The translations under genes and the position numbers were made by a program. From the sequence record MN988522.1: 64,000 nt of DNA, one strand, 5' to 3'. Shown one piece after another: positions 6,998-36,474 of this stretch. The stretch's first letter is position 1. The number at the start of each line of letters is the position of its first letter. The notes beneath the pieces were generated by a model. The model was not told where the DNA came from and ran no database searches. It saw nothing but the letters and a program-made list of their open reading frames with translations.

Positions 6998-7255
6998 ATG
7001 AGTAAAGCATCTGAAGTTATCAAGAAGCTGAATGAGACTAAACCTTCAGAAGATCTTCTGAAGAGCGAGGTCCAGGAAATTAAGCAGAAGATGATTAATC
7101 AAGGCATCGTCAGACCTGACTATGCTGTTGAAAGATTTAGTCTGGTTAGTGATAGATTCAGAAATGTCTTGATACACGGTATTGTTCATGGAACAAATAC
7201 TGCAGGATGGAGAGATCAGATTAAAGATTTGAGATCTCAGAATTTGATTAGTTAG
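6998..7255 (+). CDS. hypothetical protein with MSKA...LNE N-terminal motif
   Basis: 85 aa ORF; stop codon overlaps G1 of tRNA-Gly. Confidence 0.7.
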   Translation: MSKASEVIKKLNETKPSEDLLKSEVQEIKQKMINQGIVRPDYAVERFSLVSDRFRNVLIHGIVHGTNTAGWRDQIKDLRSQNLIS

Positions 7256-7329
7256 CGGACGTAACTCAGAGGTAGAGTGCAATCCTTCCAAGTTTGAAGT
7301 CGTGGGTTCGATTCCCATCGTCCGCTCCA
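7255..7329 (+). tRNA. tRNA-Gly(UCC)
   Basis: Acceptor GCGGACG/CGTCCGC, loop CT-TCC-AA, U73, CCA. Confidence 0.93.
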
Positions 7330-7330
7330 T

Positions 7331-7407
7331 GCATCCTTAGCTCAGTTGGTTAGAGCATCAGTTTTACATACTGAGGGTCACTAGTTCGAGCCTAGTAGGA
7401 TGTACCA
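7331..7407 (+). tRNA. tRNA-Val(UAC)
   Basis: Acceptor GCATCCT/AGGATGT, loop TT-TAC-AT, CCA. Confidence 0.95.
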
Positions 7408-7426
7408 GTTATATTAAACTATTCGT

Positions 7427-7502
7427 GGGAGATTAGTTCAGTGGTTAGAACCGTCAGCTCATAACTGATTAAACAGAGGTTCGAATCCTCTATCTCCTAC
7501 CA
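7427..7502 (+). tRNA. tRNA(CAU), elongator Met or Ile2
   Basis: Acceptor GGGAGAT/ATCTCCT, loop CT-CAT-AA, CCA. Confidence 0.88.
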
Positions 7503-7505
7503 AGT

Positions 7506-7582
7506 ACCACCTTAACTCAGATGGATAGAGTACTCGACCGATAATCGAGTTGTCATTGGTTCAAGTCCAATAGGTGGTACCA
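7506..7582 (+). tRNA. tRNA-Ile(GAU), C at position 33
   Basis: Stem CTCGA/TCGAG, loop CC-GAT-AA, CCA. Confidence 0.88.
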
Positions 7583-7600
7583 ACTTTTATTGAGTAGATA

Positions 7601-8188
7601 ATGAAGTGCAGTTATTGTGAAACTGAGTTTAGACATCTGAGTCGACATGTTAGATATTGTCCTCAGAATCCTGACAGAATTGTCAAGTTAAATCAGTTCT
7701 CTAAGGCTGAGTCATTAGGCTTACCTAAGCCGCCATTGTCTGAGAAATCTCGGAGAATGACTACTGAAAGAAATGCATCTCGAGTATGGACTCCAGAGAT
7801 CAGATCTAAATTATCTAAGAGTATGATTAAGTACTTTAAAGATAATCCTGAAGCTCATCCGTACTTAAAGTATCATTCAAGTGGTGAATCATATGCTGAA
7901 GGATTCTTTCGAGAATTCTTTTTAAGTCATGATTTATCATTCAAACAAGAGTTGCAGGTTGGTCTCTATACACTTGACTTCGCATTTGAGGACAAGATGA
8001 TTGATGTAGAGATCAACGGTAACTTTCACTATAATAATCCTGGAATTGTTGAGAAAGATCAACGACGAAGACTCTTCTTGGAAGAGCGTGGATGGACTAT
8101 TATAGAAGTTCGATGGTCTGAGTATAAGAAGATGAATGAGTCAGAGCGATCTGATTATCTGAATTCCTTATTATCTCAACTATCCTGA
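7601..8188 (+). CDS. putative homing endonuclease (Zn finger + DUF559/Vsr-like nuclease)
   Basis: CSYC..H..C; LDFAFEDKMIDVEINGNFHY; GWTIIEVRW. Confidence 0.75.
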   Translation: MKCSYCETEFRHLSRHVRYCPQNPDRIVKLNQFSKAESLGLPKPPLSEKSRRMTTERNASRVWTPEIRSKLSKSMIKYFKDNPEAHPYLKYHSSGESYAEGFFREFFLSHDLSFKQELQVGLYTLDFAFEDKMIDVEINGNFHYNNPGIVEKDQRRRLFLEERGWTIIEVRWSEYKKMNESERSDYLNSLLSQLS

Positions 8189-8264
8189 CGCGGGATGGCG
8201 CAGTCGGTAGCGCGCAAGAGTCATAATCTTGAGGTCGAGGATTCGAGTTCCTCTCCCGCAACCA
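8189..8264 (+). tRNA. initiator-like tRNA-Met(CAU)
   Basis: C1:A72 mismatch (CGCGGGA/TCCCGCA), anticodon CAT, CCA; lacks the three G-C anticodon-stem pairs. Confidence 0.85.
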
Positions 8265-8525
8265 GTTTCAGTTAACGAGGCCACCGTATCTAGATTAATC
8301 TACCTCACAGGTATCTAGATCGTAGTGAGTTTGAGCGGAGCAGTCTTAACTGCATCGTTGTGGTCCCATCGATAATGCGGTCCCGAGATGGGATAGGACT
8401 CTATCTGAGTGCACAAGGATAGATGCACCTAAGCGGTCTCTGCGATGAGATCCACCGCTCCATAATCTGTAATCTTGATGTGAACAGTGTCGTAGATATC
8501 TCATCAGTAATATCGAGTTAATGAG

Positions 8526-9026
8526 ATGATGTATATCCGATACGCTTTATACTTACCAGTTAATCTACTACTTGTACTGTCAGCATATGTGTTCTCACCT
8601 ATTCTAGCAGCACTTTCTCTAATTACAGGTCCGACGCTCCCTGGAGTACTTCAATGGTTCTCTACTACGGATGACAATCTAGACGGTGGAATTCATCAGA
8701 ATGTCTCAGGCTATAAGTCTGGACTGAAAGGATTCTCACTATGGTGGCAACGTACATGTTGGATCTGCAGAAATCCTGCTCATGGATGGCAGTCTAACTT
8801 ACTAGGTATGTCTGTTGATGGATTCGAATTTATCGAGAAGATCGATATTTCTACTCCTAAATGGTATCTGATGAAGAATAATAAGCATACGTTCTTCATG
8901 TGGAAGAAGGATCAACCACTCTTCTCCAAGTATTATCTGAAACTATGGTTCGGATGGCTGAATACTGCATATGATGGTAAGAATCATCATTATGAATTTC
9001 AGATCGGACTGAAGAGTAAAAATTAA
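8526..9026 (+). CDS. phage membrane-anchored hypothetical protein
   Basis: N-terminal hydrophobic segment; WFSTTDDNLDG...W..RNPA motif. Confidence 0.7.
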   Translation: MMYIRYALYLPVNLLLVLSAYVFSPILAALSLITGPTLPGVLQWFSTTDDNLDGGIHQNVSGYKSGLKGFSLWWQRTCWICRNPAHGWQSNLLGMSVDGFEFIEKIDISTPKWYLMKNNKHTFFMWKKDQPLFSKYYLKLWFGWLNTAYDGKNHHYEFQIGLKSKN

Positions 9027-9036
9027 TATAGGTTAA

Positions 9037-9114
9037 GTCGCTATGACGGAGTGGTCCAACGTAATGGTCTGCAAAACCATATAACCGCTGGTTCGAATCC
9101 AGCTAGCGACTCCA
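9037..9114 (+). tRNA. tRNA-Cys(GCA)
   Basis: Acceptor GTCGCTA/TAGCGAC, loop CT-GCA-AA, U73, CCA. Confidence 0.93.
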
Positions 9115-9124
9115 AGGTTAAACT

Positions 9125-9235
9125 ATGAAGTATGTAATCATTCTAGCACTTCTTCTAGCAGGATGTCAATCTGCTGAAGAGCGTTACTATTCAGATTTGT
9201 CTACAGGTGTAGGCATGGTTCTAAAGGATAAATAA
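9125..9235 (+). CDS. small putative lipoprotein (36 aa, not in ORF track)
   Basis: MKYVIILALLLAGCQS: signal peptide with lipobox LAGC; upstream AAGGT. Confidence 0.6.
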   Translation: MKYVIILALLLAGCQSAEERYYSDLSTGVGMVLKDK

Positions 9236-9352
9236 ATGTCAACTATTATTGTTGCAGTTGTAGCATTCATTGCAGGTGGATACGCTAGTAAGAATTTTGG
9301 ATTCGATCTAGTTGAGTATGCCAAGGCTGCTTATAACAAGTTTAAGGCATAA
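9236..9352 (+). CDS. small membrane peptide (38 aa, not in ORF track)
   Basis: [18 protein letters not shown]..., abuts previous stop. Confidence 0.5.
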
Positions 9353-9361
9353 TGCCTTTGT

Positions 9362-9438
9362 CGGAGCGTAGCGCAGCCAGGTAGCGCAATAGTTTTGGGT
9401 ACTATGGGTCGTCTGTTCGAATCAGACCGTTCCGACCA
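9362..9438 (+). tRNA. tRNA-Pro(UGG)
   Basis: Acceptor CGGAGCG/CGTTCCG, loop TT-TGG-GT, CCA. Confidence 0.95.
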
Positions 9439-9440
9439 AT

Positions 9441-9517
9441 ATTCCCTTGGACAAGCGGTTTAAGTCATCTCACTTTCACTGAGAAGATCACGGGTTCAAA
9501 TCCCGTAGGGAATACCA
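9441..9517 (+). tRNA. tRNA-Glu(UUC)
   Basis: Acceptor ATTCCCT/AGGGAAT, loop CT-TTC-AC, CCA. Confidence 0.93.
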
Positions 9518-9522
9518 ATTTC

Positions 9523-9550
9523 AGCGAAGTTAGGCTCTTGTAGCCTTCCT
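9523..9550 (+). promoter_or_regulatory. conserved motif copy 3
   Basis: agcgaa gttaggctcttgt agccttcct. Confidence 0.7.
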
Positions 9551-9615
9551 TCTTGTATCGGTTAGTAGTGTCAATCCGAGCTATTAATGTGAGTATTAAG
9601 TATCGGATTCTATGA

Positions 9616-9712
9616 TCGAGAGTGGTGGAACGGTAGACACATCCAGATAAAAGAGCAGTTTCTGGACGCTACTTAAATATGCGTGCTAGTTCAAGTCTAG
9701 CCTCTCGAACCA
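9616..9712 (+). tRNA. Leu-type (class II) tRNA-like gene with aberrant 13-nt anticodon loop
   Basis: Acceptor TCGAGAG/CTCTCGA, A73, CCA, Leu-type D arm, T arm; TCCAGA/TCTGGA stem closes TAAAAGAGCAGTT. Confidence 0.75.
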
Positions 9713-9746
9713 ATATTATATGCTCATTCTTAGATAGGGATTACCA

Positions 9747-10508
9747 ATGGGTAAATTACATGAAATCCTCGCGGTTGAAGGTGACCTCGTAGGTGTAGCC
9801 AAGAAAGTTACTGAAGAAGCTATCGCTACGTTCAGCAAGCGTGCAGATCACTTCAGTGAGACTACTACTGAACAGAAATACTTTGCAGACGATGAGCAGC
9901 ATCTCAATACGTCTGAATCTAAGGCAATGGTGACCACTGTACCTGACAAGCTCAAGTACATCGTTGATCCTATTGCTAAGTTCTTCGATGCGTACTATTC
10001 GAAGGAAGCTACCAATCAGATCGCTAAGGCTGACGTAGAAGTCAAGGGTACAACGATCTTTGCAGATGTTCCAGCAACGGTTCTCCTAGGTATGGAGACT
10101 AAGCTTCGTGAACTCCGTAAGGTCTATGAATCGATTCCGACTCTCGCTCCTGGTGTATTCTGGGAGAAGGATGTTAATCGTCCGGCAGGTGTATACCGTG
10201 CTCGTGAACCTGAAGTCCGATTCGTTACGAAGAAGACTGTACGTCCGATCACTCTTTCACCTGCTACTGACAAGCATCCTGCTCAGATTGAGAAGGTCAA
10301 TGAAGATCTTCCTGTCGCTAAGAAGACGATTACTACCTGGAGTAGTATGATGTCGTCAGCTGACAAGAGCAAGGTCCTCGAACGTATCGATACTCTGATC
10401 CGTGCAGTTAAGACTGCTCGTCAGCGTGCAAACGGTACTGAGGCAGTATCTGCTTCATCCTTCGGTGATAAGATTTTCGACTTTATCCATCAAGGTATCG
10501 TCGACTAA
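9747..10508 (+). CDS. conserved uncharacterised protein (KLxxxLAVE / ATDKHPAQ family)
   Basis: 253 aa; motifs MGKLHEILAVE, VPATVLLGME, ATDKHPAQIE, AVKTARQRAN recalled from an uncharacterised family. Confidence 0.75.
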   Translation: MGKLHEILAVEGDLVGVAKKVTEEAIATFSKRADHFSETTTEQKYFADDEQHLNTSESKAMVTTVPDKLKYIVDPIAKFFDAYYSKEATNQIAKADVEVKGTTIFADVPATVLLGMETKLRELRKVYESIPTLAPGVFWEKDVNRPAGVYRAREPEVRFVTKKTVRPITLSPATDKHPAQIEKVNEDLPVAKKTITTWSSMMSSADKSKVLERIDTLIRAVKTARQRANGTEAVSASSFGDKIFDFIHQGIVD

Positions 10509-10691
10509 GAATTGAATGTTGAGGCTACCAGCATAGCCTCCATTCTCCGACTCCCATAGGGACAAACTCAGCCTTAAACTTATTGTGAGTATCAAGAATT
10601 TATCTTCTGCTCAAGATAAACAAACTAGCTTTGTATCCCTAAAACTTAGACAAGATTTACCAGATCTAGTCGTAGCATATCTCTATTTTCC

Positions 10692-10777
10692 CGGAAGGTC
10701 GTGAGTTCGAGTCTCATCACCGCACCCAATTACCTACAATTGGACTGATGCGGTGTAGCTCAGTGGTAGAGCGTTCG
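10692..10777 (+). ncRNA. circularly permuted tRNA-like domain within a ~420 nt non-coding region
   Basis: T arm GTGAG-TTCGAGT-CTCAT, then CACCGCA-C-CCA...TGCGGTG acceptor-like stem, then D arm TA-GCTC-AGTGGTA-GAGC. Confidence 0.8.
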
Positions 10778-10962
10778 TTTTATCTTGAAGATATCCTATC
10801 GATGATGACTGTATGAATCTATCGTAACGATTAAATATGCTCCGCGATAGGAGTGTATGTTACATTAACAAGAACAGGGTGGTTCCATGCGGAATGTGGT
10901 TCCACCCACCTCTTCTTATATAAGATCATTCGGATTTTATATAATAAGAATTTGAGGTTTAC

Positions 10963-11250
10963 ATGAGTAAGGCATCAAGATTACTTAGCAAGATCAATGA
11001 ATTGGACGGTGGATCTAAGGACCCACTGGTTCAATCAGGTTGTGCTAAGATTGTAGCTTATTGTCAGAAGAAGAGTCTTAGTGCTACTGAGATTGAGCAG
11101 ATTAAGGATCAGATTCTTGACGACGAGCCTCTTCACAATCATACTGCAGATACACTAGCTGCAATCGGTCTTGATATGAATATCAAGTCTGAGCTTGTAG
11201 CGATTGGTCTCAGTAGTGATGAAGCTGATGCGATTATGAATGTAACCTAA
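10963..11250 (+). CDS. hypothetical protein with MSKA...INE N-terminal motif
   Basis: 95 aa, RBS GAGGT. Confidence 0.75.
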   Translation: MSKASRLLSKINELDGGSKDPLVQSGCAKIVAYCQKKSLSATEIEQIKDQILDDEPLHNHTADTLAAIGLDMNIKSELVAIGLSSDEADAIMNVT

Positions 11251-11257
11251 CAGACAT

Positions 11258-11331
11258 GCTCCTATAGTTAAGTGGTATAACTCCTGTTTTGTAATCAGGG
11301 TTCCTCAGTTCGATTCTGGGTGGGAGCACCA
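11258..11331 (+). tRNA. tRNA-Thr(UGU)
   Basis: Acceptor GCTCCTA/TGGGAGC, loop TT-TGT-AA, CCA. Confidence 0.92.
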
Positions 11332-11383
11332 TGATTTCTTGAATCCTAACTCATAGTGAGTTAGAGATAACAAGGAAGATAAA

Positions 11384-11680
11384 ATGAGTGATGAAGTTAA
11401 TAAGACTGTCGTAACTAGAGAAGAACATCGAGGTACTGCTTGTAAGTACTATGATACTCGTGGTAAAGCATACGATGCTATTATCACTGAAGTATGGGGA
11501 CCTCAATGCGTCAACCTTGTCTATGTCAATGATGTAGAAGGTCAGAAAGATTCTTATGGTCAGAAATTGATCAGATCATGTTCTGTGATGCATGGTAGTG
11601 TTCAGCAAGCTCATGGCAACTATTGGATGTTACCAGGAGAGACTCGAGTTTCTAAATATGTTCATGATTCAGCTATTTAA
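11384..11680 (+). CDS. hypothetical protein
   Basis: 98 aa, RBS AAGGA. Confidence 0.7.
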   Translation: MSDEVNKTVVTREEHRGTACKYYDTRGKAYDAIITEVWGPQCVNLVYVNDVEGQKDSYGQKLIRSCSVMHGSVQQAHGNYWMLPGETRVSKYVHDSAI

Positions 11681-11745
11681 TTAACTTCTGTGATCTTCCG
11701 ACCTTGACGCGACGAAGTAGCAGATAACTTATAAACTTTCTTGTT

Positions 11746-12333
11746 ATGTTTTATACTATCTATCGAATAACCAACAATGTTAACAGTAAGATATATGTTG
11801 GTATGCACCAGACTACTAATTTAGATGACGGTTATATGGGATCGAGCAGATTATTGTTCAATGCTATGAAGAAGCACGGTCCTGATAACTTCTCTAAAGA
11901 GATTCTACATGTCTTTGATAATAAAGAAGACATGTTTAGTATGGAAGCACAGATAGTAGACGAACAATTTGTTAAAAGATCTGATACATACAACCTAAAG
12001 ACAGGTGGAGTAGGATCTTTTAGCTACATTAATTCATCTCCTGAATTTCGACAAAGGTCAATTTCAAGAATTCGTGAATTATGTAAGTCTGATACACCGT
12101 ATCGTAGAATTCAATCTAATAAATTGAAAGATGTTCGATACGATTTCACTGGTCATAAGCATACTGAAGAATCGATCTCTAAGATGAAAATATCTAAGGT
12201 CGGTCACGGAGAGGGTTCTTCGAATTCTCAGTATGGGACGATCTGGATTAATAATGGAGTGAAGAACTCTAAACTTAAATCTAATCTACCTATTCCAGAT
12301 GGTTGGAGTAGAGGTAGAAAGATGGGCTTGTAG
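11746..12333 (+). CDS. GIY-YIG homing endonuclease (Seg-like) with NUMOD3
   Basis: TIYRITN..KIYVGMH..DGYMGS; GHKHTEESISKMK; WINNG..GWSRGR. Confidence 0.9.
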   Translation: MFYTIYRITNNVNSKIYVGMHQTTNLDDGYMGSSRLLFNAMKKHGPDNFSKEILHVFDNKEDMFSMEAQIVDEQFVKRSDTYNLKTGGVGSFSYINSSPEFRQRSISRIRELCKSDTPYRRIQSNKLKDVRYDFTGHKHTEESISKMKISKVGHGEGSSNSQYGTIWINNGVKNSKLKSNLPIPDGWSRGRKMGL

Positions 12334-12398
12334 TGATAACGGGAGCACGATGCCTTTGCACGGCATAGGACAGGGTTCGATTCCCTGCTAGTCCACCA
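12324..12398 (+). tRNA. tRNA-Ala(UGC)
   Basis: G3.U70 pair, loop TT-TGC-AC, CCA; first 10 nt overlap the GIY-YIG gene. Confidence 0.92.
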
Positions 12399-12450
12399 CA
12401 TTAGGTCGTATCAACCTGAGGTTAACCGTAGTTACTCAAACTGATACAAT

Positions 12451-12537
12451 GGGATTTCAGACGTGTTGGAGTGCGATCGGCAGACTGTAAATCTGTCCTC
12501 TTAGAGCTACTAGGTTCGAATCCTAGAAGTCCCACCA
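12451..12537 (+). tRNA. tRNA-Tyr(GUA)
   Basis: Stem GCAGA/TCTGT, loop CT-GTA-AA, variable arm, CCA; atypical D arm. Confidence 0.85.
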
Positions 12538-12542
12538 TATTT

Positions 12543-12584
12543 ATAGCCTCATATCGGAGCAATCTGGTATGAGGCTATTTCTTT
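12543..12584 (+). terminator. intrinsic terminator
   Basis: ATAGCCTCATA...TATGAGGCTAT hairpin followed by TTCTTT. Confidence 0.75.
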
Positions 12585-12658
12585 CATGTTAAAGAGAGGG
12601 GCGATGTATTATGATCGTTACGACATCTTCTAGGTAAAACAACCTAGGAGTATAAAGC

Positions 12659-12961
12659 ATGAAGTCGCATTATATTAAGTCTGAGAAGTTTCGTTGGAAT
12701 CGAGACGATAAGATCGAATATATTTACAAGCTCAGAGCTGGTAATTATTACCGTGATCTTAAGACCTTTCAGGAGATCTCTGCGAATGAGTTCGTTAAGT
12801 TTGATCCTGACTGTATCGAGTATAAGATTCCTCCTCGTTATGGACGACTTAATCATTACTTGAACAAGTGGAATCTTGAGAGATTTCCTTCTAAGTCTTA
12901 TAAGAAGTCTTGGAAGTTTGCTCACAGATGCCGTAAGCAATGGATGATCAATCTTGAATAA
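12659..12961 (+). CDS. hypothetical protein
   Basis: 100 aa, RBS AGGAG. Confidence 0.65.
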   Translation: MKSHYIKSEKFRWNRDDKIEYIYKLRAGNYYRDLKTFQEISANEFVKFDPDCIEYKIPPRYGRLNHYLNKWNLERFPSKSYKKSWKFAHRCRKQWMINLE

Positions 12962-13139
12962 GATGACATTCGATGATTGGTGTGATCAGGTCGATACTGT
13001 AGCGAGTAAAGCTATGGGAGGACCTGAATCATACACTAAGGCCACTGGCAGAGAATGCTGGATGGATATGTATAACGATGGATTCACTCCTGAAGATGCA
13101 TGGACTGAAGAGTCTTTATGTATTCAGGAGTCCCTTTAA
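12954..13139 (+). CDS. hypothetical protein
   Basis: 61 aa acidic ORF overlapping previous gene. Confidence 0.6.
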   Translation: MNKMTFDDWCDQVDTVASKAMGGPESYTKATGRECWMDMYNDGFTPEDAWTEESLCIQESL

Positions 13140-13157
13140 TTCTAGATGGATAAGTTA

Positions 13158-13301
13158 ATGAATTTTCTCGGTAAAATCTTTTCTGCAGATTCTAAGAAGC
13201 TGGATGACGCGAAGGCTCTTCTTGCAGAAGTAACTGCATCGAAGAATCGTATCATCAATAATGATCTTAAGGGTCGTATTGAGACTTTCTTGAGTGCATG
13301 A
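13158..13301 (+). CDS. small hypothetical protein (47 aa, not in ORF track)
   Basis: MNFLGKIFSADSKKLDDAKALLAEV...; alternative in-frame ATG at 13146. Confidence 0.5.
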   Translation: MNFLGKIFSADSKKLDDAKALLAEVTASKNRIINNDLKGRIETFLSA

Positions 13302-13340
13302 GATAGAAGGCTAAAAGACGCGAATTATTCGCCTAGATTG

Positions 13341-13368
13341 AGCGAACTTAGCGTCTGATAGCCTTCCT
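13341..13368 (+). promoter_or_regulatory. conserved motif copy 4
   Basis: agcgaa cttagcgtctgat agccttcct, 17 nt before tRNA-Asn. Confidence 0.7.
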
Positions 13369-13385
13369 TCTTTGTCAGACGGTGA

Positions 13386-13461
13386 TGGCTAGTAGCTCAG
13401 TTGGTAGAGCATTGCACTGTTAATGCGACGGTCGTAGGTTCGAGCCCTACCTAGTCAGCCA
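13386..13461 (+). tRNA. tRNA-Asn(GUU)
   Basis: Acceptor TGGCTAG/CTAGTCA, loop CT-GTT-AA, G73, CCA. Confidence 0.95.
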
Positions 13462-13484
13462 GTCTGCTTATAAAGGATTCTTAG

Positions 13485-13691
13485 ATGGAACGTGTATATA
13501 GTTTAGTTTATGTTGCTATCATTACAGCAGGTGTAGTCGCAGGTATCACAGCACTCACTCTACCTTTGTACTATGGTACGATTGATAGTAATCGTAAACA
13601 ATCTGAGTTGTCAAGTAAGTGTGTTGACTCAGGAGGGTCCTGGATCGTAGGTCCTAATGGATACTACCAGTGTATTGCTGGTCGTAAGTAA
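13485..13691 (+). CDS. small membrane protein
   Basis: N-terminal TM helix; C-terminal CVDSGGSW...C. Confidence 0.65.
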   Translation: MERVYSLVYVAIITAGVVAGITALTLPLYYGTIDSNRKQSELSSKCVDSGGSWIVGPNGYYQCIAGRK

Positions 13692-13700
13692 TGTGAATAA

Positions 13701-13792
13701 GGATAGTTGGCTGAGTCTGGTCTAAGGCGCTCGACTTGAAATCGAGAGGACGTGAGAGCGTTCCGTGGGTTCGAATCCTACACTATCCGCCA
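13701..13792 (+). tRNA. tRNA-Ser(UGA)
   Basis: Acceptor GGATAGT/ACTATCC, loop CT-TGA-AA, long variable arm, CCA. Confidence 0.95.
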
Positions 13793-13810
13793 TATTTATT
13801 ATTGAGTATA

Positions 13811-14197: not shown

Positions 14198-14261
14198 TTC
14201 AATGGTAGAATGCGAGTCTCCAAAACTTGATATGAGAGTTCGATTCTCTCAGCACGTGCCA
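14188..14261 (+). tRNA. tRNA-Trp(CCA)
   Basis: Loop CT-CCA-AA, G73, CCA; first 10 nt overlap the HNH gene. Confidence 0.9.
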
Positions 14262-14297
14262 ATTCTAGATATTAAATAAACACTTGGATAAGAAGAA

Positions 14298-14942
14298 ATG
14301 TCAAAAGCAAGAGATTTACTTAATACCTTGAATGAAGCTGATGATTGGAATATTCACAAGAAAGAGTTGAAGAAGGCTGGATTTGATCTCCATCCTAATC
14401 ATCACGCTAATGTGAATATCAATCGTAACAACTATCCTCAGAATCGTGATATCTATACGGGTAAAATGAGTAATGGTCATACGATGGTTATTACTCAATT
14501 AACTCCGATTGATATGGATCGATACGCATCTGTTAAGGATGCTTCTGGTAAATTTATCAAGCACTACTATGTAGCTCCTGTTAAACCTACACTGAGTAAA
14601 AGTCCTGTATTAAAGTCTACAGCGATCGGTAATGATCCTAAGACAGTACTTGAAGAAATCAAAGCAGCTATGAGAATGGTTCCAGAAGGACGTCAGGCTA
14701 CCTTTAGATCTGTTGAACAGAATGGTAAGTACTATGAGTTCGATGTCAGATACTGGGGAAGCTGGGAAGTTCCTGATGGTGAAGACGATGATGGAGACTA
14801 CGACTTTGAAGTCTTGACATCTAAATCGTCTAAGTCACTTCAGAACATTGTTGAGCCTATCATTAAGAAATATCCAAGTCTAGATATCTACTATCAAACT
14901 GGAGAGAAGAATTATATTACTGTTCATGCTACTGTAAAGTAG
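14298..14942 (+). CDS. hypothetical protein with MSKA...LNE N-terminal motif
   Basis: 214 aa. Confidence 0.75.
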   Translation: MSKARDLLNTLNEADDWNIHKKELKKAGFDLHPNHHANVNINRNNYPQNRDIYTGKMSNGHTMVITQLTPIDMDRYASVKDASGKFIKHYYVAPVKPTLSKSPVLKSTAIGNDPKTVLEEIKAAMRMVPEGRQATFRSVEQNGKYYEFDVRYWGSWEVPDGEDDDGDYDFEVLTSKSSKSLQNIVEPIIKKYPSLDIYYQTGEKNYITVHATVK

Positions 14943-14952
14943 TTGACAGTAT

Positions 14953-15037: not shown

Positions 15038-15043
15038 AATTAT

Positions 15044-15178: not shown

Positions 15179-15186
15179 TCATATTC

Positions 15187-15269: not shown

Positions 15270-15279
15270 TTCAGTTTAT

Positions 15280-28600: not shown

Positions 28601-28996
28601 GAATTCAGATGTCAACATCTATTCGAGACGATTGATACTGTTCTCGAAACTGCAGTTGATCTACCTAAGCGTAGATTTAATCTTCCGATGAAGATCGACT
28701 GGGAAATCGGTGTTAATCAGTCTGATGCAATTGAGTTCAAAGAAACATCTCGATTTGATGAAGGTCGAGGTCGTACGTATCACTTTGAATGCAATGAAAA
28801 TGCAATGATGCCTGTATTCGATCGTCTAAAGAACTACTTTGACATCGAATATGAAGTCACTTCTAGAGAGACTGAGAGAGCATCGCTGAAAGAAATGTTC
28901 GTTGCAAGACGAGCATTCTCTAAGTATCTTGGTACAGATGTAACCGTCGTAGGTGGTAACCTCAAACTAGTGAAGAAAAATGGGATAAAAATATGA
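25667..28996 (+). CDS. family A DNA polymerase with N-terminal UDG-like domain
   Basis: UDG-like CHMC, VGEAP, HPSY; exonuclease DYEGT, YCCYD; motifs DYSQAEVRILA, RRYAK..SILYG, THDS. Confidence 0.92.
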   Translation: MSLEIESIINKVDLTSDVRVCHMCPLAEKFGGCDNLGRVSFEIVGQNPKVLLVGEAPAAEDLKSERPFSSQSGSFLRMAMAEIGINDYALANVIMCQPKSVNIYTPTPEESAHCKAHIQRFVEKYKPETVILLGRGAYEVILPESYFAGQSVTNVTKKKAIEIDGVRYGAAFHPSYIFRNGGKESPQYIDFLNRLRRLTQNSVDAEFIVPFKIVNLDQLDETLEEFDVYKELGFDYEGTSLDPYDVNYQVLGLGMSSMDKAVYIDFHREPTQEEKNKISDFIRKKQMWVYNVNYETKVTWSKLSNDLIRFHDAMTLVKIDCSPGSLKDNARKYLNAEIWEEIVGNLTTLFYDIFQFMKKIEEKSPKLYNACRQANMEAIYLLKEDTAEKITGGKKNPKVTRYRTKQADHADYISAKISALREFCSDEDIQRGFTKFPYEWAAVPPKILGEYCCYDSYYTLGLKNHLWDKYKSVYQYYITQGWLGSTMESYGLNWDDDKASEHERFYLVEATTCLNQIIQKLDFGEKTLDIHTRASMIFNDSSLPDARKLIDLKGIFNPGTPDKLKQKPFWDKYVTDFTTAISIYLVLSEQILMSPIIPDQAIELVDRQDLNKAIENLMSVDWTKYDGVDLKTAKSIQKLMMDLIGTLDEKIGWKLYAFRSDVLEWQYKAHETYGGLDIDNRETWTPEFELLYLLRRYKKVEKSKNTYINGKVGRARVWLSTVDDYQKPPVRLKRYFDVMEERQWKKYELQHNERWILDTEFNVAGANTKRWKAAIHTVPWGSELREIYASRWWDGLFMHYDYSQAEVRILAAISQDRALLEAFADPDTDIHMFVASRIWKKDPKDVTPAERRYAKVCSFSILYGKSIEGFATEHTKGDVAAAKRIFDDFYAAFPQVKEWIEKQHRDAKVSGKVFTLFGDPLYLDMSDPNGAMRDAQNWPIQSSSSCVAGWAIWMNYEFSRNRNIPILPMVFTHDSHDMEFRCQHLFETIDTVLETAVDLPKRRFNLPMKIDWEIGVNQSDAIEFKETSRFDEGRGRTYHFECNENAMMPVFDRLKNYFDIEYEVTSRETERASLKEMFVARRAFSKYLGTDVTVVGGNLKLVKKNGIKI

Positions 28997-29724
28997 GTCG
29001 AGCAAAATCACTGATCGACATGATTAAAGGAACCAAGAACGAGTCTGGTGACGATGACGACGAAATCTCAAATCGTCGTCGTGGTGGTACTTGGATTGAT
29101 CCTCATCATGTTGACGCAGCATCCAAGAATCTGAAGCGTACTCAGTCATTCTACAAGAAGGCTAGTAATGCTAGCTCAGTTGAAGATCAAGAGTATTGGT
29201 TAGCTCGAGTCTTTAACAAGAATGCTGTTGCTAAGAGAATCTCCTCTGGATTCTATAACAAGGAAGCTAAGGCAGGAGTCGTAGGCGTCGATGACGTTGA
29301 AGATCTGTCAGCATCTCTTGTTACAGGTAATCCAAGAGCATCGGGTCGTGTTACGACTAAGGATCACACACGTAATCCTGAAGAGATCTTTGCTGCTAAC
29401 CAGATCGTTAAAGCTCTCTACGATACGATTGACAAGAAGTGGCCTGGACGTCCTCAGAACAAGATGGTTCTGACATACTTCCTCAAGGTCAATAAAGCTG
29501 ATCATCTTATTAACTTTAAGCTTCCATACGATGATCGTGTGGAAGAAATCATCTCTTCTATTGAGAAATATGCTAAAGACAATAACTCCAAGATTACTTG
29601 GACTACTCCTAAGCAGTTTCAGAATTTTTCAGGTATTGAAGACAGAATGTATGCAAAGGTCATGCAGTTCCTAGCAGATAATGCTGTAGAATTGGGTGCT
29701 CTTATCATTCGAGGTAAGAAATAA
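28993..29724 (+). CDS. hypothetical protein with MSRA N-terminal motif
   Basis: 243 aa. Confidence 0.75.
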   Translation: MSRAKSLIDMIKGTKNESGDDDDEISNRRRGGTWIDPHHVDAASKNLKRTQSFYKKASNASSVEDQEYWLARVFNKNAVAKRISSGFYNKEAKAGVVGVDDVEDLSASLVTGNPRASGRVTTKDHTRNPEEIFAANQIVKALYDTIDKKWPGRPQNKMVLTYFLKVNKADHLINFKLPYDDRVEEIISSIEKYAKDNNSKITWTTPKQFQNFSGIEDRMYAKVMQFLADNAVELGALIIRGKK

Positions 29725-30071
29725 TGGACCAGAGAGTACTTGACGTTCTAGCTCAAGGATATATTAATCGTGAGCTTACACTACCAGCCGCTGATCTATC
29801 TAAGGCTGTTATTTATATTGTTAATTATCATGTTAGACATAAGACAAGTGGACTGGCAGATCTAAAGACTGCTTATGGTAGTCCTGAGTCTTCTAATCTG
29901 GCAGTTAGGTTCTACTCTACAGGTCTATTTAATGGTGTTGTAGATAATGATTCTAAGAGCTCAGATCTATTCTGGTCTCTATTCAATTCGATGACTACAT
30001 CTCTGATGATTGAGTCCATCAATGAATCGTTAGCTGAATCCTCGAAAGAAGTTGAAGTGATCGCCGAATAA
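29724..30071 (+). CDS. hypothetical protein
   Basis: 115 aa, coupled to previous gene. Confidence 0.7.
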   Translation: MDQRVLDVLAQGYINRELTLPAADLSKAVIYIVNYHVRHKTSGLADLKTAYGSPESSNLAVRFYSTGLFNGVVDNDSKSSDLFWSLFNSMTTSLMIESINESLAESSKEVEVIAE

Positions 30072-30166
30072 AGGCGCTTACTTGTTGGGTAAATGGGTGC
30101 AGTTAGGCTCTTGGAGGGATTCTTATTCGGTGAGCCCTCCAAGGCTTCCAGAAAGAGGGTAATGTA

Positions 30167-30823
30167 ATGGCTAGCGATAGACAGATGAAAGGTTACATCT
30201 GGGGAGAGCAAATCCTGGATCATGCTCACATTGAGCATTATGCAAGGGCGATGAGATCCGATGATGTACGTACCGAGGAGTACTGGTACCAGGCAGTATT
30301 TCATGGGAAGAACCACTCTAAGGTTCTTCAGTCGGAAGTCTTTCATAAGAAAATCCGCAACAACGTTACAAATAAAGTAGAAGTTGAGACTCTGGTTTCT
30401 ACTTCTAACTCTGACGTCGTTAATGATGTTCTAGCAGAGGAGAGAAAGAATGAAGTAAAATATTCTCGAGTTATCGAGGATGATAAGGTCGGTAATATGT
30501 CCGACTATCTTCCCGATGCAACTGTTGGGTTCTCAGTTATTATCAGAGAAATAGCTGACAAATGCAACGATGATGAAATCAAGGTCCTGAGCTACTTTGT
30601 ATGTCAGGAACATCTGGATAATATCCTATTCGAGGGGAATTCGATTCATTCATCAAACGATCGCTTCAATCGTACGATCCTAGGTATCTGGGAAAAGAAT
30701 GTGAAGAGCATCAATGATCTGAATCGATTTGTAGGTACTCGTGCTCGTGCTGATAAAGCTAGGTGGAGACTCTGCAATCTCTTGAAGAAGGAGTATCCTG
30801 AACTCTTGTCAGGAAAACGATGA
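30167..30823 (+). CDS. hypothetical protein
   Basis: 218 aa; preceded by CTTGGAGGG/CCCTCCAAG hairpin. Confidence 0.7.
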   Translation: MASDRQMKGYIWGEQILDHAHIEHYARAMRSDDVRTEEYWYQAVFHGKNHSKVLQSEVFHKKIRNNVTNKVEVETLVSTSNSDVVNDVLAEERKNEVKYSRVIEDDKVGNMSDYLPDATVGFSVIIREIADKCNDDEIKVLSYFVCQEHLDNILFEGNSIHSSNDRFNRTILGIWEKNVKSINDLNRFVGTRARADKARWRLCNLLKKEYPELLSGKR

Positions 30824-31059
30824 GTCCATCTAACAAGCCCTATGACCCAAAGTTAGACACAATCATCTACGAAAATAGACATCCTGAAACGGGTTTGTGC
30901 ATCTCGGTGCATAAATACGGAAGCAGTGAACCGAAGATCAAGTTAGGTCCAAGAATCGTCGGTGACGACTCCAAACCTGTCTACTTGAAATTAGGTAGAA
31001 TATCTATAAACGAGTTTTTGTGGATATCCGAGGTCCTAAAACCCTACGTTAAATCTTAG
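30820..31059 (+). CDS. small protein, possibly PC4-like nucleic-acid binder
   Basis: ISVHKYGSSEPKIKL..KLGRISINE pattern; weak recognition. Confidence 0.45.
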   Translation: MSPSNKPYDPKLDTIIYENRHPETGLCISVHKYGSSEPKIKLGPRIVGDDSKPVYLKLGRISINEFLWISEVLKPYVKS

Positions 31060-31071
31060 AGGATCTAAAAC

Positions 31072-34000
31072 ATGCAACTTTCTCTGAAGCCAGTCTCTCC
31101 AGAATCTGTACTCTTGACTTCACAAGGAGAGGTCAAGTCGTATGAGACTCTGAACTTCAAGACAGGTCTACCTGTTCGAGACGGTCTCTTGTGCCAGAAG
31201 GTATTCGGACCGATTAGAGACTACGTATGTGAATGCGGCAAGTACGATGGTAAGAAATACCAGGGACATACTTGTGAGAAGTGCGGTGTTACGGTAGCGA
31301 GTTCACGTGCTCGTACTGTGAGAATGGGTCATATTGATCTTCAAGTTCCCATTCTTAATCCGTTGATGATCGAGTCGATCGAATCGATTATAGGTCTCCC
31401 ATCCAGAAAGATGGAGGACTTTATGAAGAACAAGATCTGCCTGAAATTTTCAGCATCTGGTACAGGTAATCTTGTTCGTAAGGACGGTACACGAGGTATC
31501 GCGTATTTTGTAGATCCTAAGGAATCTGATCCTCGATCTCCTACTCTGCAGCATACGAAGTCGTCTCTGGTTCTTTATGAACTCTTGACGGATCTCGATA
31601 TTGAAGAGACGCTCAAAGTCAATGGATCCAAGATCCTGAAGACCTATGTGCAGAAGAACTTCCCTCTTTCTAATCTCTTCATTCGTTATCTACCGGTATC
31701 TCCAGCAGGATACCGTCCAGTCACTCGTATGAGAAACTACTATTCTCAGCATCCCAAGAATGACCTTTATCAGAAGATCATTCGACGTACTCTGCGAGTG
31801 AAGGAACTGGTTAATATCAATGCAGACTCAATGATTCTTCAGGAAGAGGCAGGCATTCTGTATAAGTCTGTCGATCAACTCTTCACTGGAGGAGCTCGAG
31901 ATGGCGATGGGAACCCTCTTCCTGGAACCATTGAGAAGATGATGGGTAAGAGAGGTATTCTCCGAGGAAATCTTCTCGGTAAGCGTACCGACTACTCTGG
32001 ACGTTCAGTTATCACTTCAGCAGGTGATCGTGTAGAAGTGGACCAGATTGGTCTACCTCGTAAGATGGCATACATCTTGTTTCGTCCTTTCATTCTCCGT
32101 TATCTGATGACGGAGTATCTGGATCATTATACTGAAGCACTGAAGCACTACGAGAAGAAGACTGTTATCGCACTGAAGTCTCTCGAGATGGTAGCTAAGG
32201 ATTATCCGATCATCATGAATCGTGCTCCTACGCTTCATAGATACGGTGTAATGTCTTTCCGTACCAAGTTGGTAAATGGTAAGGCTATCCTCGTTCATCC
32301 GATTGTATGTTCTCCATTCAATGCAGACTTCGACGGAGATACTGTAGCTATCCACTTGCCTCTTTCAGCTAAGTCTGTTCAGGAGTGCAAAGATTATCTC
32401 ATGCCTCAGAACAATCTCCTGTCTTCACTTGATGGTGATCCGATCATCAATATGTCGCACGAGATGGTTATCGGTCTTGCTATCATGTCTCGTATTAAGG
32501 ATCATGATAAGGGATTCGGTACATTCCGACGTATGGATGAGCTCGAGTATCTTCATACTGTCACCAATCCTCAGACTAGCCGTCCTACACTTGAGATCTA
32601 CGATAGAATCAAGTGGAAAGATGAACGAGGAGTGACAGAGACGTGCTATGGTCGACTTCTTCTCGAGCAGACATTCAAGACCAAGAATCTTCCGAAGGAC
32701 TTCTCTAAGAAGACTATTCGTCGGATGATCAGTGATGCGTACGACAAGCTTGGACCTGATGAACTGATTAAGGTACTGGATGTAGCTACTCAGCTTTCAT
32801 TCAAGTATGCTACGAACTCTGGTTTCTCAGTTTCGATTGATGATTGTAAGGTACCTTCTACGAAACCTGCTAAGATTGCGAAAGCTAGAGAGCAGGAAGC
32901 TGAGAATTATCGTCAATTCGATAACAATGAAATCAATCTTGCAGAGCGTCGAGAGAACAATATTCGTCTCTGGAACGATGTCTTTGAAGATCTTCATCAC
33001 GATTGGATGAAAGAAGCAGGTGAGGACAATCCGGTAGTTCTTATGTATACTACTGGTGCTCGTGTTAGTAAGTCTCAGGTCAATCAGATCGGAGTCGCTA
33101 AGGGTCTTGTATCCAATGCACTCAATCAGATCATCGAGAAGCCTATGGTTAACTCCTTCCGTGAAGGATTGTCGACGTTTGAGTACTTTGCATCTTGCTC
33201 TGGATCTCGTAAGTCCATGGCAGACAAGAAGAATCTGACTCCCAAGTCTGGTTATCTTACACGTCGAATGATTACTGCTAGCCGAGATTTCTTCATTAAT
33301 TCAGATGATTGTGGTACCGATAAGGGTATCATGCGTACGATGAAGTCCTCGTATGGACGTTATCGTTGCGACAATGGTGAGATGATTGGTACGAACAATA
33401 GTGAAGAACTCGTTAAGGTTCGTAGTCCGATTCATTGTGAGTCGCATGGTGGTATCTGCGTTAAGTGCTACGGTATTGATCCTGCTAAGCGTAAGATCGT
33501 CACGAAGGGGTCCAACGTAGGAGCTATTGCAGCTCACTCGTTGACTGAATCTACAACTCAGATGACGATGCGTACCTTCCATACATCTGGTGCAGTCGTT
33601 CTGAAGGATAGTCCGATGGTCATTACTGCCCAGAAGGATGGTAAGATCAGCTGGGATACTCTTCATCCTGTCTACAGCAAGATTCATGTTGTTGCAGATA
33701 TGGAAGATTGGGATACACCTCTCAATGATCGATTGACGTATACAGTTCATAACAAGATGTCTCGCATTCTTGTTAAGGATGGTCAGTCTGTCAAGAAGGG
33801 TGATCCTCTAGCGATCTACGTTGATGAAGATCTTGAGAGCGACGACGTCAGTGGATCGCTCCCTAAGATTGAATCTCTGTATGAAGGTCGAGTACCTCCG
33901 AAAGCGTACAAGTCAGTTATCTCGAAGGTAGCTGGTAAGATTGGTATTAACATCGGAGATGAAGGTCTTAAGATCTTCGTTGATGGTGAATACCAAGGTA

Positions 34001-34455
34001 CTGCTCATCCTAAGACTCCGGTATTCGTTGCTCAAGGTCAGTATGTTGAAGCTGGTCAGACTCTCTCGTTTGGTTCTCCAGACGTAGTAGGTTTGTTCAA
34101 GGAGACAAAGGATCTTGATCTCGCTTACAAGGTCTTTGAGAAGACTCTGATGGATATCTACAATAAGGAAGGTCTCCAGCCAGTACCAACTCATTCGGAG
34201 ATGATCTTCAGAGCGATGTCTAATCTGGTATACACCGAGAGTGGTCCTTATGGTCTTCGATCCCATGGAGACAAGGGTAGCATTATGCTGAAGGGTATTA
34301 CTCAGATTGGTGCGAATCATCCGTCCTGGTTGAAGTCAATCGGATTCGGATGGGTAGCTCAGACGATCAGAACTTCTGCTGTGAATCTTGCTACCACGTA
34401 CGATCTTCCTACCGAACGTCTGATGTCTGGTGAATTGATTTACGAGGATAAATAA
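31072..34455 (+). CDS. rpoC: multisubunit RNA polymerase beta' subunit
   Basis: CECGKY..CEKC Zn site, RMGHI, GKRTDYSGR, NRAPTLHR, catalytic NADFDGD, SGYLTRR, TQMTMRTFH. Confidence 0.95.
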   Translation: MQLSLKPVSPESVLLTSQGEVKSYETLNFKTGLPVRDGLLCQKVFGPIRDYVCECGKYDGKKYQGHTCEKCGVTVASSRARTVRMGHIDLQVPILNPLMIESIESIIGLPSRKMEDFMKNKICLKFSASGTGNLVRKDGTRGIAYFVDPKESDPRSPTLQHTKSSLVLYELLTDLDIEETLKVNGSKILKTYVQKNFPLSNLFIRYLPVSPAGYRPVTRMRNYYSQHPKNDLYQKIIRRTLRVKELVNINADSMILQEEAGILYKSVDQLFTGGARDGDGNPLPGTIEKMMGKRGILRGNLLGKRTDYSGRSVITSAGDRVEVDQIGLPRKMAYILFRPFILRYLMTEYLDHYTEALKHYEKKTVIALKSLEMVAKDYPIIMNRAPTLHRYGVMSFRTKLVNGKAILVHPIVCSPFNADFDGDTVAIHLPLSAKSVQECKDYLMPQNNLLSSLDGDPIINMSHEMVIGLAIMSRIKDHDKGFGTFRRMDELEYLHTVTNPQTSRPTLEIYDRIKWKDERGVTETCYGRLLLEQTFKTKNLPKDFSKKTIRRMISDAYDKLGPDELIKVLDVATQLSFKYATNSGFSVSIDDCKVPSTKPAKIAKAREQEAENYRQFDNNEINLAERRENNIRLWNDVFEDLHHDWMKEAGEDNPVVLMYTTGARVSKSQVNQIGVAKGLVSNALNQIIEKPMVNSFREGLSTFEYFASCSGSRKSMADKKNLTPKSGYLTRRMITASRDFFINSDDCGTDKGIMRTMKSSYGRYRCDNGEMIGTNNSEELVKVRSPIHCESHGGICVKCYGIDPAKRKIVTKGSNVGAIAAHSLTESTTQMTMRTFHTSGAVVLKDSPMVITAQKDGKISWDTLHPVYSKIHVVADMEDWDTPLNDRLTYTVHNKMSRILVKDGQSVKKGDPLAIYVDEDLESDDVSGSLPKIESLYEGRVPPKAYKSVISKVAGKIGINIGDEGLKIFVDGEYQGTAHPKTPVFVAQGQYVEAGQTLSFGSPDVVGLFKETKDLDLAYKVFEKTLMDIYNKEGLQPVPTHSEMIFRAMSNLVYTESGPYGLRSHGDKGSIMLKGITQIGANHPSWLKSIGFGWVAQTIRTSAVNLATTYDLPTERLMSGELIYEDK

Positions 34456-34458
34456 AGG

Positions 34459-34656
34459 ATGCAAGACCTATCTCAACTATGTGAAGTTGAGATGGAGAAG
34501 TTAGTTGAAATACTAATGAGATCGACTCACTTGACACTCGACGGTGTTGAGCTGAGTCGATCTCATGAATATCATAATAGCCCATCTGTCTCTACAATTA
34601 AAACTCATAAAGTCCTTGATGACTCATACATTACAGTTAGACTGAAATATGTATAA
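34459..34656 (+). CDS. hypothetical protein
   Basis: 65 aa. Confidence 0.5.
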   Translation: MQDLSQLCEVEMEKLVEILMRSTHLTLDGVELSRSHEYHNSPSVSTIKTHKVLDDSYITVRLKYV

Positions 34657-35362
34657 CTTGCAATACGATGATGGAATTCTTAAATCAAATAGGGAGTCTC
34701 TCGTAAACATACGAGCTCCATTCTTCAAACGGATTGATCGACGATCTCGCAAGTCGTCCATCGAGAGATTAATGATCTCACCTGATACAACAAGAAATTG
34801 TAGTCAGATTAAGAGATTTCTCGTTCCGTTCAACGATAAGTACTTGTACAGCATGCATGTGACTTATCGTGACGACTTAAAGTGTCAATCTATTTATGAC
34901 ACTAACAAGTCTCTCAAGCGAATCCTCCGATCTAAAATGTTAATGTCAGCTGTGAACAGGATAAATGAGTATCCTCAACTCAAAGCAGACATATTGTCTG
35001 TAATCAAGCTTGTAGTTAATTCTTGGGAGTTTGATGGTCTTATCACAGACATTGAATGGCTCCAGGATGAAAATCTACTGGATACTGTGATATCTAAGTG
35101 GAAACTGAAGAAGTACGAATCCTCTACAGAGCGAGGGTCAGTGATCAATCTCTTAATAAAGAGTTTTGATGGAGTTCCACTTAATCTTCTATCTCATCTA
35201 GAGATGAAGAAAATCAGTATTGAGGATACTGACATTGAGGACGTTAAGTTTAAATGTCCTCTGATATTAATGCGATCGAATTCATCTTGTGCAGGATTCA
35301 TATCTAAGTCCTTGGATAAAGGACTACCTGTGAGTCTGTTCAAGATTGATATAAAAGAGTAA
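34649..35362 (+). CDS. hypothetical protein
   Basis: 237 aa, last + strand gene before convergence. Confidence 0.7.
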   Translation: MYNLQYDDGILKSNRESLVNIRAPFFKRIDRRSRKSSIERLMISPDTTRNCSQIKRFLVPFNDKYLYSMHVTYRDDLKCQSIYDTNKSLKRILRSKMLMSAVNRINEYPQLKADILSVIKLVVNSWEFDGLITDIEWLQDENLLDTVISKWKLKKYESSTERGSVINLLIKSFDGVPLNLLSHLEMKKISIEDTDIEDVKFKCPLILMRSNSSCAGFISKSLDKGLPVSLFKIDIKE

Positions 35363-35419
35363 AAATAAAGGCCACTAGGCGGGACCCTTCTCGGAGGATT
35401 CACCTAGTGGCCTATTTTT
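35361..35419. terminator. bidirectional terminator at strand switch
   Basis: AAAAAT-AA-AGGCCACTAGG...CCTAGTGGCCT-ATTTTT between convergent genes. Confidence 0.85.
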
Positions 35420-35424
35420 GTGTC

Positions 35425-35679
35425 TTATGGAAGAAGTGGTACGAAACTCTTCAGCTTATTGTACACATCATCCTGCTTACCCATTTCAGTCGAATACTTA
35501 TCAAGAATCGTCTGATTATCTGGGAATTCATTACCTTGATTAGCTACCCAGTCGACATAATCATGCCAATCCTGGTCATCGTGAAGATCACGATGCTGCT
35601 TAATCAGATTTGCATATTCAGCATCTGTGAATTCATGCAATGATGAAAGCTTCTCAAGAATGTCTTTAGCTCTACTCAT
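35425..35679 (-). CDS. hypothetical protein with MSRA...LHE motif
   Basis: Likely start MSRAK at 35679 (track start 35694). Confidence 0.7.
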   Translation of the reverse strand: MSRAKDILEKLSSLHEFTDAEYANLIKQHRDLHDDQDWHDYVDWVANQGNEFPDNQTILDKYSTEMGKQDDVYNKLKSFVPLLP

Positions 35680-35690
35680 ATTAATCTCCG

Positions 35691-36146
35691 TCAAGCTACT
35701 ACAGCGAGTTCATTACTTGGTACTTCATGAACGTCACCATCGACTTCGATCATGCAGATTTCACCGTTCACTTTAAGAACAGTGCCTGTACCGTGAACTG
35801 ATTCAACAGTGTTATTAAGAAGGATCTCACGACCATTCTTATCTTCGCATTCGATGAATGCTCTCTGACCATTGTCAGGAGTGTAATCAGGAGCTTTACC
35901 TGTTACGCCATCTGCATTCACATTGTTCCAGTGACCGTATGCGTCAAAGTATAGTACGTCGAGATCCGAACTATCTTGGAACTTGTCACGTTCAGCCATA
36001 GCATCCTTGAAAGGCATTGCTAGAGGACCTAGGATAACTTTATTGTTGGTACGATTAACAATGTACGTACCAATGCGTTTACTGGTATCTTCGTCGATAC
36101 CTGTGATCTTTGACAGATCACTAATCAGACCTGATGCTCTGCTCAT
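35691..36146 (-). CDS. hypothetical protein with MSRA...IDE motif
   Basis: 151 aa, RBS AAGGA. Confidence 0.75.
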   Translation of the reverse strand: MSRASGLISDLSKITGIDEDTSKRIGTYIVNRTNNKVILGPLAMPFKDAMAERDKFQDSSDLDVLYFDAYGHWNNVNADGVTGKAPDYTPDNGQRAFIECEDKNGREILLNNTVESVHGTGTVLKVNGEICMIEVDGDVHEVPSNELAVVA

Positions 36147-36174
36147 ATTAAATATCCTTGTTAGCGTTTATGAC

Positions 36175-36474
36175 TTAGAGACCAGCAGCCTTGCGCTTTC
36201 TCATAGTCATTTGACGCTTACGAGAGATAGCAGCTTGCTGTCCTCTCTTCTTACGAGCACCCATCTTCGCAGCCTTACGCTTAGCGATGATCTCACCGGC
36301 ACTCATCTTGACGCAAGTCTTACCATCAATCTTGTAACCTGGAGGGCAATCAAGAATAACACTCTTGGCTCCACCTCTGAATGTTACTTTCTTCTTAGGA
36401 GCAGCTTCACTAGCTGGAATAGAAGACTCATAGTAAGCATCAATTTTAGTGATCAAATCTGCAGATTTAGACAT
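36175..36474 (-). CDS. basic protein, possibly prohead-core type
   Basis: MSKSADLI..YYE; CPPGYK..TCVK then K/R-rich tail resembling T4-like prohead core proteins. Confidence 0.5.
   Translation of the reverse strand: MSKSADLITKIDAYYESSIPASEAAPKKKVTFRGGAKSVILDCPPGYKIDGKTCVKMSAGEIIAKRKAAKMGARKKRGQQAAISRKRQMTMRKRKAAGL

Follow-up and report, generated by a model that had tools for sequence, protein, structure and literature searches.

A shared N-terminal peptide on unrelated proteins of Rhizobium phage RHph_TM30 is a probable capsid-targeting propeptide

Tagged genes in the window

We analyzed a stretch of 64,000 nucleotides from sequence record MN988522.1 (here referred to as "the window"), in which seven open reading frames (ORFs) encode proteins that begin with a similar short peptide, here called the tag. 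The window comes from a Rhizobium phage of the RHph_TM30 group, genus Cuauhnahuacvirus (Kleczkowskaviridae), with a genome of about 207 kb. A 5.3 kb probe of the window matches 10 Cuauhnahuacvirus Rhizobium phage records at 98.5–100% identity, including RHph_TM30 (MN988521.1, 207,623 bp; hereafter TM30), whose base ~124,183 corresponds to window base 1 with a few small indels between the two records. All genome-wide counts below refer to the full TM30 record (207.6 kb) and not just to the window. An earlier note, made from the letters of the window, had listed seven N-termini; all of them proved to be ORFs with exactly those starts and peptides, and each is preceded by a plausible ribosome-binding site. 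Six of the seven are annotated coding sequences in MN988521.1, the exception being 6998-7255.

Three plus-strand tagged genes are interspersed with tRNA genes, and in each of them the tag occupies the first 13 codons. The gene at 6998-7255 (85 residues, tag ending L-N-E) is located between tRNA-Gln and tRNA-Gly. It is unannotated in both MN988521.1 and the record of phage Y65; given its tag and its 100% conservation in Y65, it probably represents a gene overlooked in annotation. Its protein matches no Pfam or PHROG family. EVB93_297 (10963-11250, 95 residues, tag ending I-N-E) is situated directly upstream of tRNA-Thr, and EVB93_308 (14298-14942, 214 residues, tag ending L-N-E) between tRNA-Trp and tRNA-Leu. 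The latter protein belongs to phrog_38558, a family with no assigned function. Compared with its Y65 orthologue, the 95-residue protein has 90 of 95 residues identical, and the changes within the tag are confined to its free positions. The 214-residue protein is identical to its Y65 counterpart in residues 1-13 and only 80% identical overall; identity between the two phages is 99% or more for five of the remaining six tagged proteins. Judged from these identities, the cargo at 14298-14942 in the tRNA region is fast-evolving.

The fourth plus-strand gene, EVB93_323 (28993-29724, 243 residues), overlaps the DNA polymerase A gene at the stop codon of the latter. In its protein an acidic linker comes after the first Glu, at residue 17. 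A word-index search gave two metagenomic relatives of the protein, which is otherwise an orphan; among its homologues the tag is kept in one metagenomic fragment and absent from a syntenic metagenomic locus (L012). Because one orthologue does without it, the tag is gained or lost as a module. In an AlphaFold2 model of this protein (mean predicted local distance difference test, pLDDT, 46), residues 4-12 are helical. The gene also has a weak paralogue at 30167-30823 on the plus strand; the two share an E-E-Y-W...V-F block and lie upstream of a beta-prime-like RNA polymerase gene, and only the first member of the pair carries the tag. A sigma-like identity could not be confirmed for either protein.

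The remaining three genes are on the minus strand. EVB93_330 (35425-35679, 84 residues, tag ending L-H-E at residue 16) is the third gene of the minus-strand late block, EVB93_331 (35691-36146, 151 residues) has a tag ending I-D-E at residue 19, and EVB93_332 (36175-36474, 99 residues) encodes a tagged gp68-like prohead core protein, whose mature part is basic with an isoelectric point (pI) of about 11.

Reality of the tag at the protein level

The strict tag pattern was defined as M-S-[KR]-[AS]-x-x-[LIV]-[LI] and tested on 4698 start-codon ORFs of the TM30 genome. A genome-wide scan of N-termini, which the earlier note had proposed, extended the seven members to ten. All ten are on the coding strand, and there are none among the approximately 4300 non-gene start-codon ORFs. 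Based on position-specific N-terminal residue frequencies of the other 352 genes, 0.054 matches would be expected per 360 genes, giving a Poisson probability of about 5e-20 for the ten observed. The three further members, at record positions 75828 and 82018 (plus strand) and 198307 (minus strand), are outside the window and belong to the genes EVB93_202, EVB93_213 and EVB93_376. EVB93_376, which is located within the head module, encodes a very acidic protein of 105 residues. Moreover, two looser candidates lie at positions 75372 and 67784 on the plus strand of the TM30 genome.

The tag Ser is encoded by codons of both the AGY and the TCN families, depending on the gene, and five different codons are used for its Lys/Arg. 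The DNA upstream of the tagged genes is unrelated from one gene to another. When the first 20 residues were removed, no similar pair was found among the proteins (best E value 0.65 in the ten-sequence database). Given the varied codons, unrelated upstream DNA and dissimilar mature parts, the tag is a protein-level signal on unrelated proteins and not duplicated DNA, which bears out the description of unrelated proteins with a shared peptide. As with the leaders of phage T4, a short N-terminal leader is common to otherwise unrelated proteins of one phage. Among 42 tags pooled from seven sources, position 4 is Ala in 39, position 3 is basic in 36 and position 7 is hydrophobic in 41. The tag has the character of a generic amphipathic helix.

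Head-maturation genes and the core protein

Outside the window, TM30 encodes a gp23-type capsid protein (EVB93_379) and a 503-residue protein, EVB93_380, in which a Peptidase_S77 domain is fused to a coiled-coil scaffold. EVB93_380 scores 34.7 bits against PF03420 (cut-off 27) and matches phrog_207 with an E value of 5e-34, and its catalytic His and Ser columns align with those of T4 gp21. By these matches it is assigned as a gp21-type prohead protease of the Peptidase_S77 family. The scaffold half of this fusion (MN988521.1 200699-202210, minus strand) holds about six repeats centred on L-G-x-P-E-E-[LI]; that these might be docking sites for the tag is pure speculation.

The 99-residue protein at 36175-36474 matches phrog_3503, "head scaffolding protein", with an E value of 3e-12. 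In an Ackermannviridae Vibrio phage, the gene order is portal, two small genes, a homologue of the 99-residue protein, protease, scaffold and capsid protein. A T4-like metagenomic phage has its homologue immediately upstream of the S77 gene, where gene 68 is found in T4. A profile built from 46 homologues aligned by hhalign to the basic C-terminal tail of T4 gp68 with 74% probability, a weak match to a low-complexity tail. Since its family matches, its C-terminal tail is basic and its homologues in other phages adjoin the protease gene, we classify the protein as a gp68-like prohead core protein; we do not call it an orthologue of gp68 because the direct profile match is weak. An exhaustive HMMER search recovered 172 clusters of core-protein homologues, about two dozen of which start with the TM30 tag plan, and another group starts with a T4-type leader resembling the N-termini of T4 ipI-III. 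From these two sets of clusters, the N-terminus of the core protein seems to show the leader used by each lineage. A tblastn search with a homologue bearing the T4-type leader gave no match in the phage collection.

The Glu at the end of the tag

A Glu occurs at residues 12-20 in each of the ten TM30 tags, and an [LIVM]-x-E ending at residues 11-20 is found in 7 of the 10 tagged proteins compared with 19% of other proteins (P 7.5e-4). The tags of Ralstonia phage RP13 end with I/V-N-E followed by Ser or Ala. In that phage the word [IV]-N-E-[SA] occurs 18 times against 3.4 expected. Thirteen of the 18 fall within tagged proteins or the block of head genes at 45-57 kb; among these, two are close to the capsid protein's N-terminus and one is close to the C-terminal end of the protease-scaffold. 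In Vibrio phage 1.031.O, the tags end with I-C-E and then Ser or Ala. This context fits cleavage by an S77 enzyme that follows the L/I-x-E rule of gp21, as far as can be read from the sequences, and the tags of RP13 and 1.031.O agree with that rule better than those of TM30.

The tag in other phages

Nine tagged proteins were found in RP13, including the orthologue of the core protein and the products of several small head-module genes; its protease is 33% identical to that of TM30 (tblastn). Vibrio phage 1.031.O has five or six neighbouring tagged head-module genes and a protease 35% identical to TM30's. Metagenomic loci that encode homologues of the core protein or the protease also carry tagged proteins. 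The richest locus, L013, has a core-protein homologue and 16 tagged genes in the 19 kb covered; the others have three (L014), two (L016), at least one (L012) and one (L017). The tag plan is kept across phages whose proteases are only 33–38% identical, and the set of cargo behind it differs between phages. For IMG/VR, an exact-pattern scan with the TM30 protease gave no match, and a search from a two-sequence alignment gave two loci.

L016 encodes one protein in which the tag is joined to an acidic stretch and the core domain. The same locus contains, at 1896-4446, a gp23-type capsid gene broken up by inserted ORFs that resemble homing endonucleases. In RP13, ORF75 (approximately 51789-52004 of its record, minus strand) lies between the portal and protease genes; a longer frame opens with the tag and ends its leader with I-N-E-S, and the annotation is probably ten codons too short. 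Just upstream of the arrays of tagged genes, L013 (7310-9196) and L014 (153-1043) each have a gene for a caspase-like Peptidase_C14 protein, the former interrupted by an intein. Neither TM30 nor RP13 has a Peptidase_C14 gene, and this enzyme was rejected as the general tag-processing enzyme on that ground.

Anti-defence domains behind the tag

Two adjacent tagged genes of RP13 encode recognizable counter-defence proteins. ORF132 is Acb1 (PF23474), which acts against the cyclic oligonucleotide-based antiphage signalling system (CBASS); it matches with 55 bits, its domain begins at residue 38 and it has two H-x-T motifs. ORF131 is the anti-Thoeris protein Tad6 (PF25188), which matches the second half of the profile with 75 bits and whose domain begins at residue 32. 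In both proteins the tag forms an extension ahead of the domain, and they are the only copies of Acb1 and Tad6 in RP13. According to a recent review, Acb1 is a cyclic-nucleotide phosphodiesterase and Tad6 a binder of ThsB. The Acb1 and Tad6 profiles had no match in the TM30 genome at their curated cut-offs. The T4 gene for Acb1, anti-CBASS gene 57B, is the immediate neighbour of ipI (T4 record 73591-74410), and in RP13 Acb1 is itself tagged.

The earlier note had further proposed that the tagged proteins are candidate anti-defence or early-takeover effectors. This holds in part: the tag precedes the Acb1 and Tad6 domains in RP13, but no such function could be assigned to the seven window proteins. 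The RP13 pair is the strongest support for counter-defence factors among the tagged proteins and, by sequence comparison, suggests that such factors are included.

Interpretation and alternative explanations

We consider it most likely that the tag serves as a capsid-targeting propeptide, which the prohead protease cleaves off, and that it is a new sequence variant of the T4 capsid-targeting sequence (CTS); we give this reading a probability of about 0.75. The N-terminal 13-19 residues would form the propeptide, with a plan of Met, a small residue, Lys/Arg, Ala, two free positions, a hydrophobic pair, two more free positions, a hydrophobic residue and, a few residues on, Glu. As a short amphipathic helix it would dock the protein onto the protease-scaffold core during prohead assembly; the scaffold-fused gp21-type serine protease would then cut after the Glu and free the mature protein inside the head. 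Part of the cargo may stay with the DNA and enter the next cell, whereas two carriers, the basic core protein and the acidic EVB93_376, may not be injected but broken down along with the scaffold. We infer packaging, docking, cleavage at the Glu, retention in the virion and injection from the analogy with T4 and from the comparative pattern. The T4-like targeting and cleavage signal suggested in the earlier note is well supported by the S77 protease, the tagged core protein, the retention of the tag in distant relatives and its usual (L/I/V)-x-E end; in sequence the tag differs from that of T4.

Several results weigh against this interpretation. In the other three TM30 tags the residue at P3 of the first Glu is K, Y or T, the cleavage site of the TM30 capsid protein itself could not be fixed, and [LIV]-N-E is not enriched across TM30 as a whole. 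Unlike those of T4 internal proteins, the mature parts are not uniformly basic, and six have a pI of 4.6 or lower. Five plus-strand tagged genes are surrounded by tRNA, replication and early-type genes. No clear common motif that could represent a shared late promoter was found upstream of the tagged and structural genes, and one 11-nucleotide A/T-rich upstream word is common to two tagged genes only. The functional searches gave no function for any TM30 cargo: Pfam and PHROGs recognized among the seven window proteins only the core protein and the one PHROG family mentioned above, the ESM Atlas gave no usable match, word-index searches with the cargo returned genus-level relatives only, and the AlphaFold2 models of the 243- and 214-residue proteins (pLDDT 46 and 51) were too poor for a fold search. 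Finally, no virion proteome or N-terminal sequences for TM30, RP13 or 1.031.O were found in the literature.

Among the alternatives, the tag may be an assembly helix of minor scaffold or core proteins, all of which are incorporated in the prohead core, cut up and expelled before DNA entry, so that none is delivered and none is an effector. One carrier is indeed the gp68-like core protein and another the very acidic head-module protein EVB93_376, T4 gp67 and gp68 are known to be fragmented and mostly lost from the head, and L016 unites tag, acidic stretch and core domain in a single protein. We nevertheless regard this explanation as unlikely, as the tag of RP13 stands ahead of Acb1 and Tad6, domains that act in the host cytoplasm, several tagged genes belong to a variable region of tRNAs and homing endonucleases a long way from the head genes, and one of them evolves at the fast rate typical of arms-race genes. 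Still less probable is a different destination, for example a phage actin-like filament, or a role as a degradation or chaperone recognition signal. A generic amphipathic helix would suit such roles, an MreB/ParM-like protein is encoded by TM30, RP13 and L013, and a Peptidase_C14 gene adjoins the tagged arrays of L013 and L014; but that peptidase is missing from TM30 and RP13, the most conserved carrier of the tag is the prohead core protein, many tagged genes are within head modules, and the context of the terminal Glu matches the S77 rule and recurs in the capsid and scaffold proteins of RP13.

The least credible explanation attributes the similarity to an RNA or translation-start element, a recent DNA duplication or chance. 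Every member does sit at a start codon, where features of the mRNA act. This explanation is already contradicted by the mixed Ser and Lys/Arg codons, the unrelated upstream DNA, the scarcity of matches expected by chance (0.05) and seen in non-gene ORFs (none), and the persistence of the peptide plan in phages with highly diverged proteases.

Beyond the capsid-targeting reading itself, a broader proposal is more tentative, and we put it at somewhat below even odds: the tag may be a portable head-loading signal of a wide clade of large myoviruses (the TM30 group, RP13, Vibrio 1.031.O and many metagenomic phages), which would preload virions with inhibitors of signalling immunity (Acb1 against CBASS, Tad6 against Thoeris) that are active before phage gene expression. 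If so, every tagged orphan, the seven window proteins included, would be a candidate injected counter-defence or takeover protein, and the N-terminus of the gp68-like core protein would reveal the loading signal of each lineage.

Comparison with known systems

A literature search found no paper describing a tag of the TM30 type, and the only injected anti-defence proteins it returned are restriction inhibitors (T4 Ip1-3 and P1 Dar). The tags on RP13 Acb1 and Tad6 suggest that ready-made delivery could extend to inhibitors of cyclic-nucleotide and Toll/interleukin-1 receptor (TIR) signalling, and no paper describing such delivery was found. If the tag loads the head, a simple pattern would list the injected proteome of phages never studied at the bench, and about ten TM30 orphans together with dozens of proteins in relatives would be candidates for new counter-defence functions.

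The Dar proteins of phage P1 are likewise anti-defence proteins that are put in the capsid via N-terminal targeting regions and delivered with the DNA (PMC9024508, PMC12810830). They differ in being large proteins incorporated in an ordered, protein-dependent way, with no common short leader and no S77-type Glu rule. In phiKZ-like giant phages such as SPN3US, many head-internal proteins are cut after Glu by an S77-family, gp21-related protease, and propeptides have been proposed to target proteins into the head (PMC5694885, PMC10052503). Those propeptides are long and mutually dissimilar, with a short motif as the site and no common N-terminal leader, whereas the tagged proteins of TM30 are small and its capsid protein is of the gp23 type.

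The closest parallel is T4. Its gp21 cuts after Glu in L/I-x-E, and its internal proteins carry core-targeting leaders of 10-19 residues (Mullaney & Black 1996; PMC9026906, PMC3012670). T4 Ip1-3 have the leader alone in common; once injected, each inhibits a type IV restriction enzyme (GmrSD inhibitors, PMC12373910). TM30 resembles this system in having a leader of similar length on otherwise unrelated proteins, an S77 prohead protease and, in 7 of its 10 tags, a Glu in [LIVM]-x-E context. Moreover, the ip genes flank the T4 tRNA cluster and three TM30 tagged genes are among tRNA genes and homing endonucleases, and in both systems the cargo set varies between related phages. On the other hand, the leaders of ipI-III (NC_000866) start with M-K-T-[YF]-x-E-F and those of TM30 with M-S-[KR]-A-x-x and a hydrophobic pair; no sequence similarity to the ipI-III leaders was found, and the tag is CTS-like in plan but of a different sequence family. 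TM30 also differs in that the leader is present on the gp68-like core protein, that scaffold and protease are fused and that acidic mature parts are frequent. A further difference is the type of cargo found in RP13 (Acb1 and Tad6). Like the T4 sequence, the tag could serve for the packaging of foreign proteins, in this case in rhizobial, Ralstonia or Vibrio phages.

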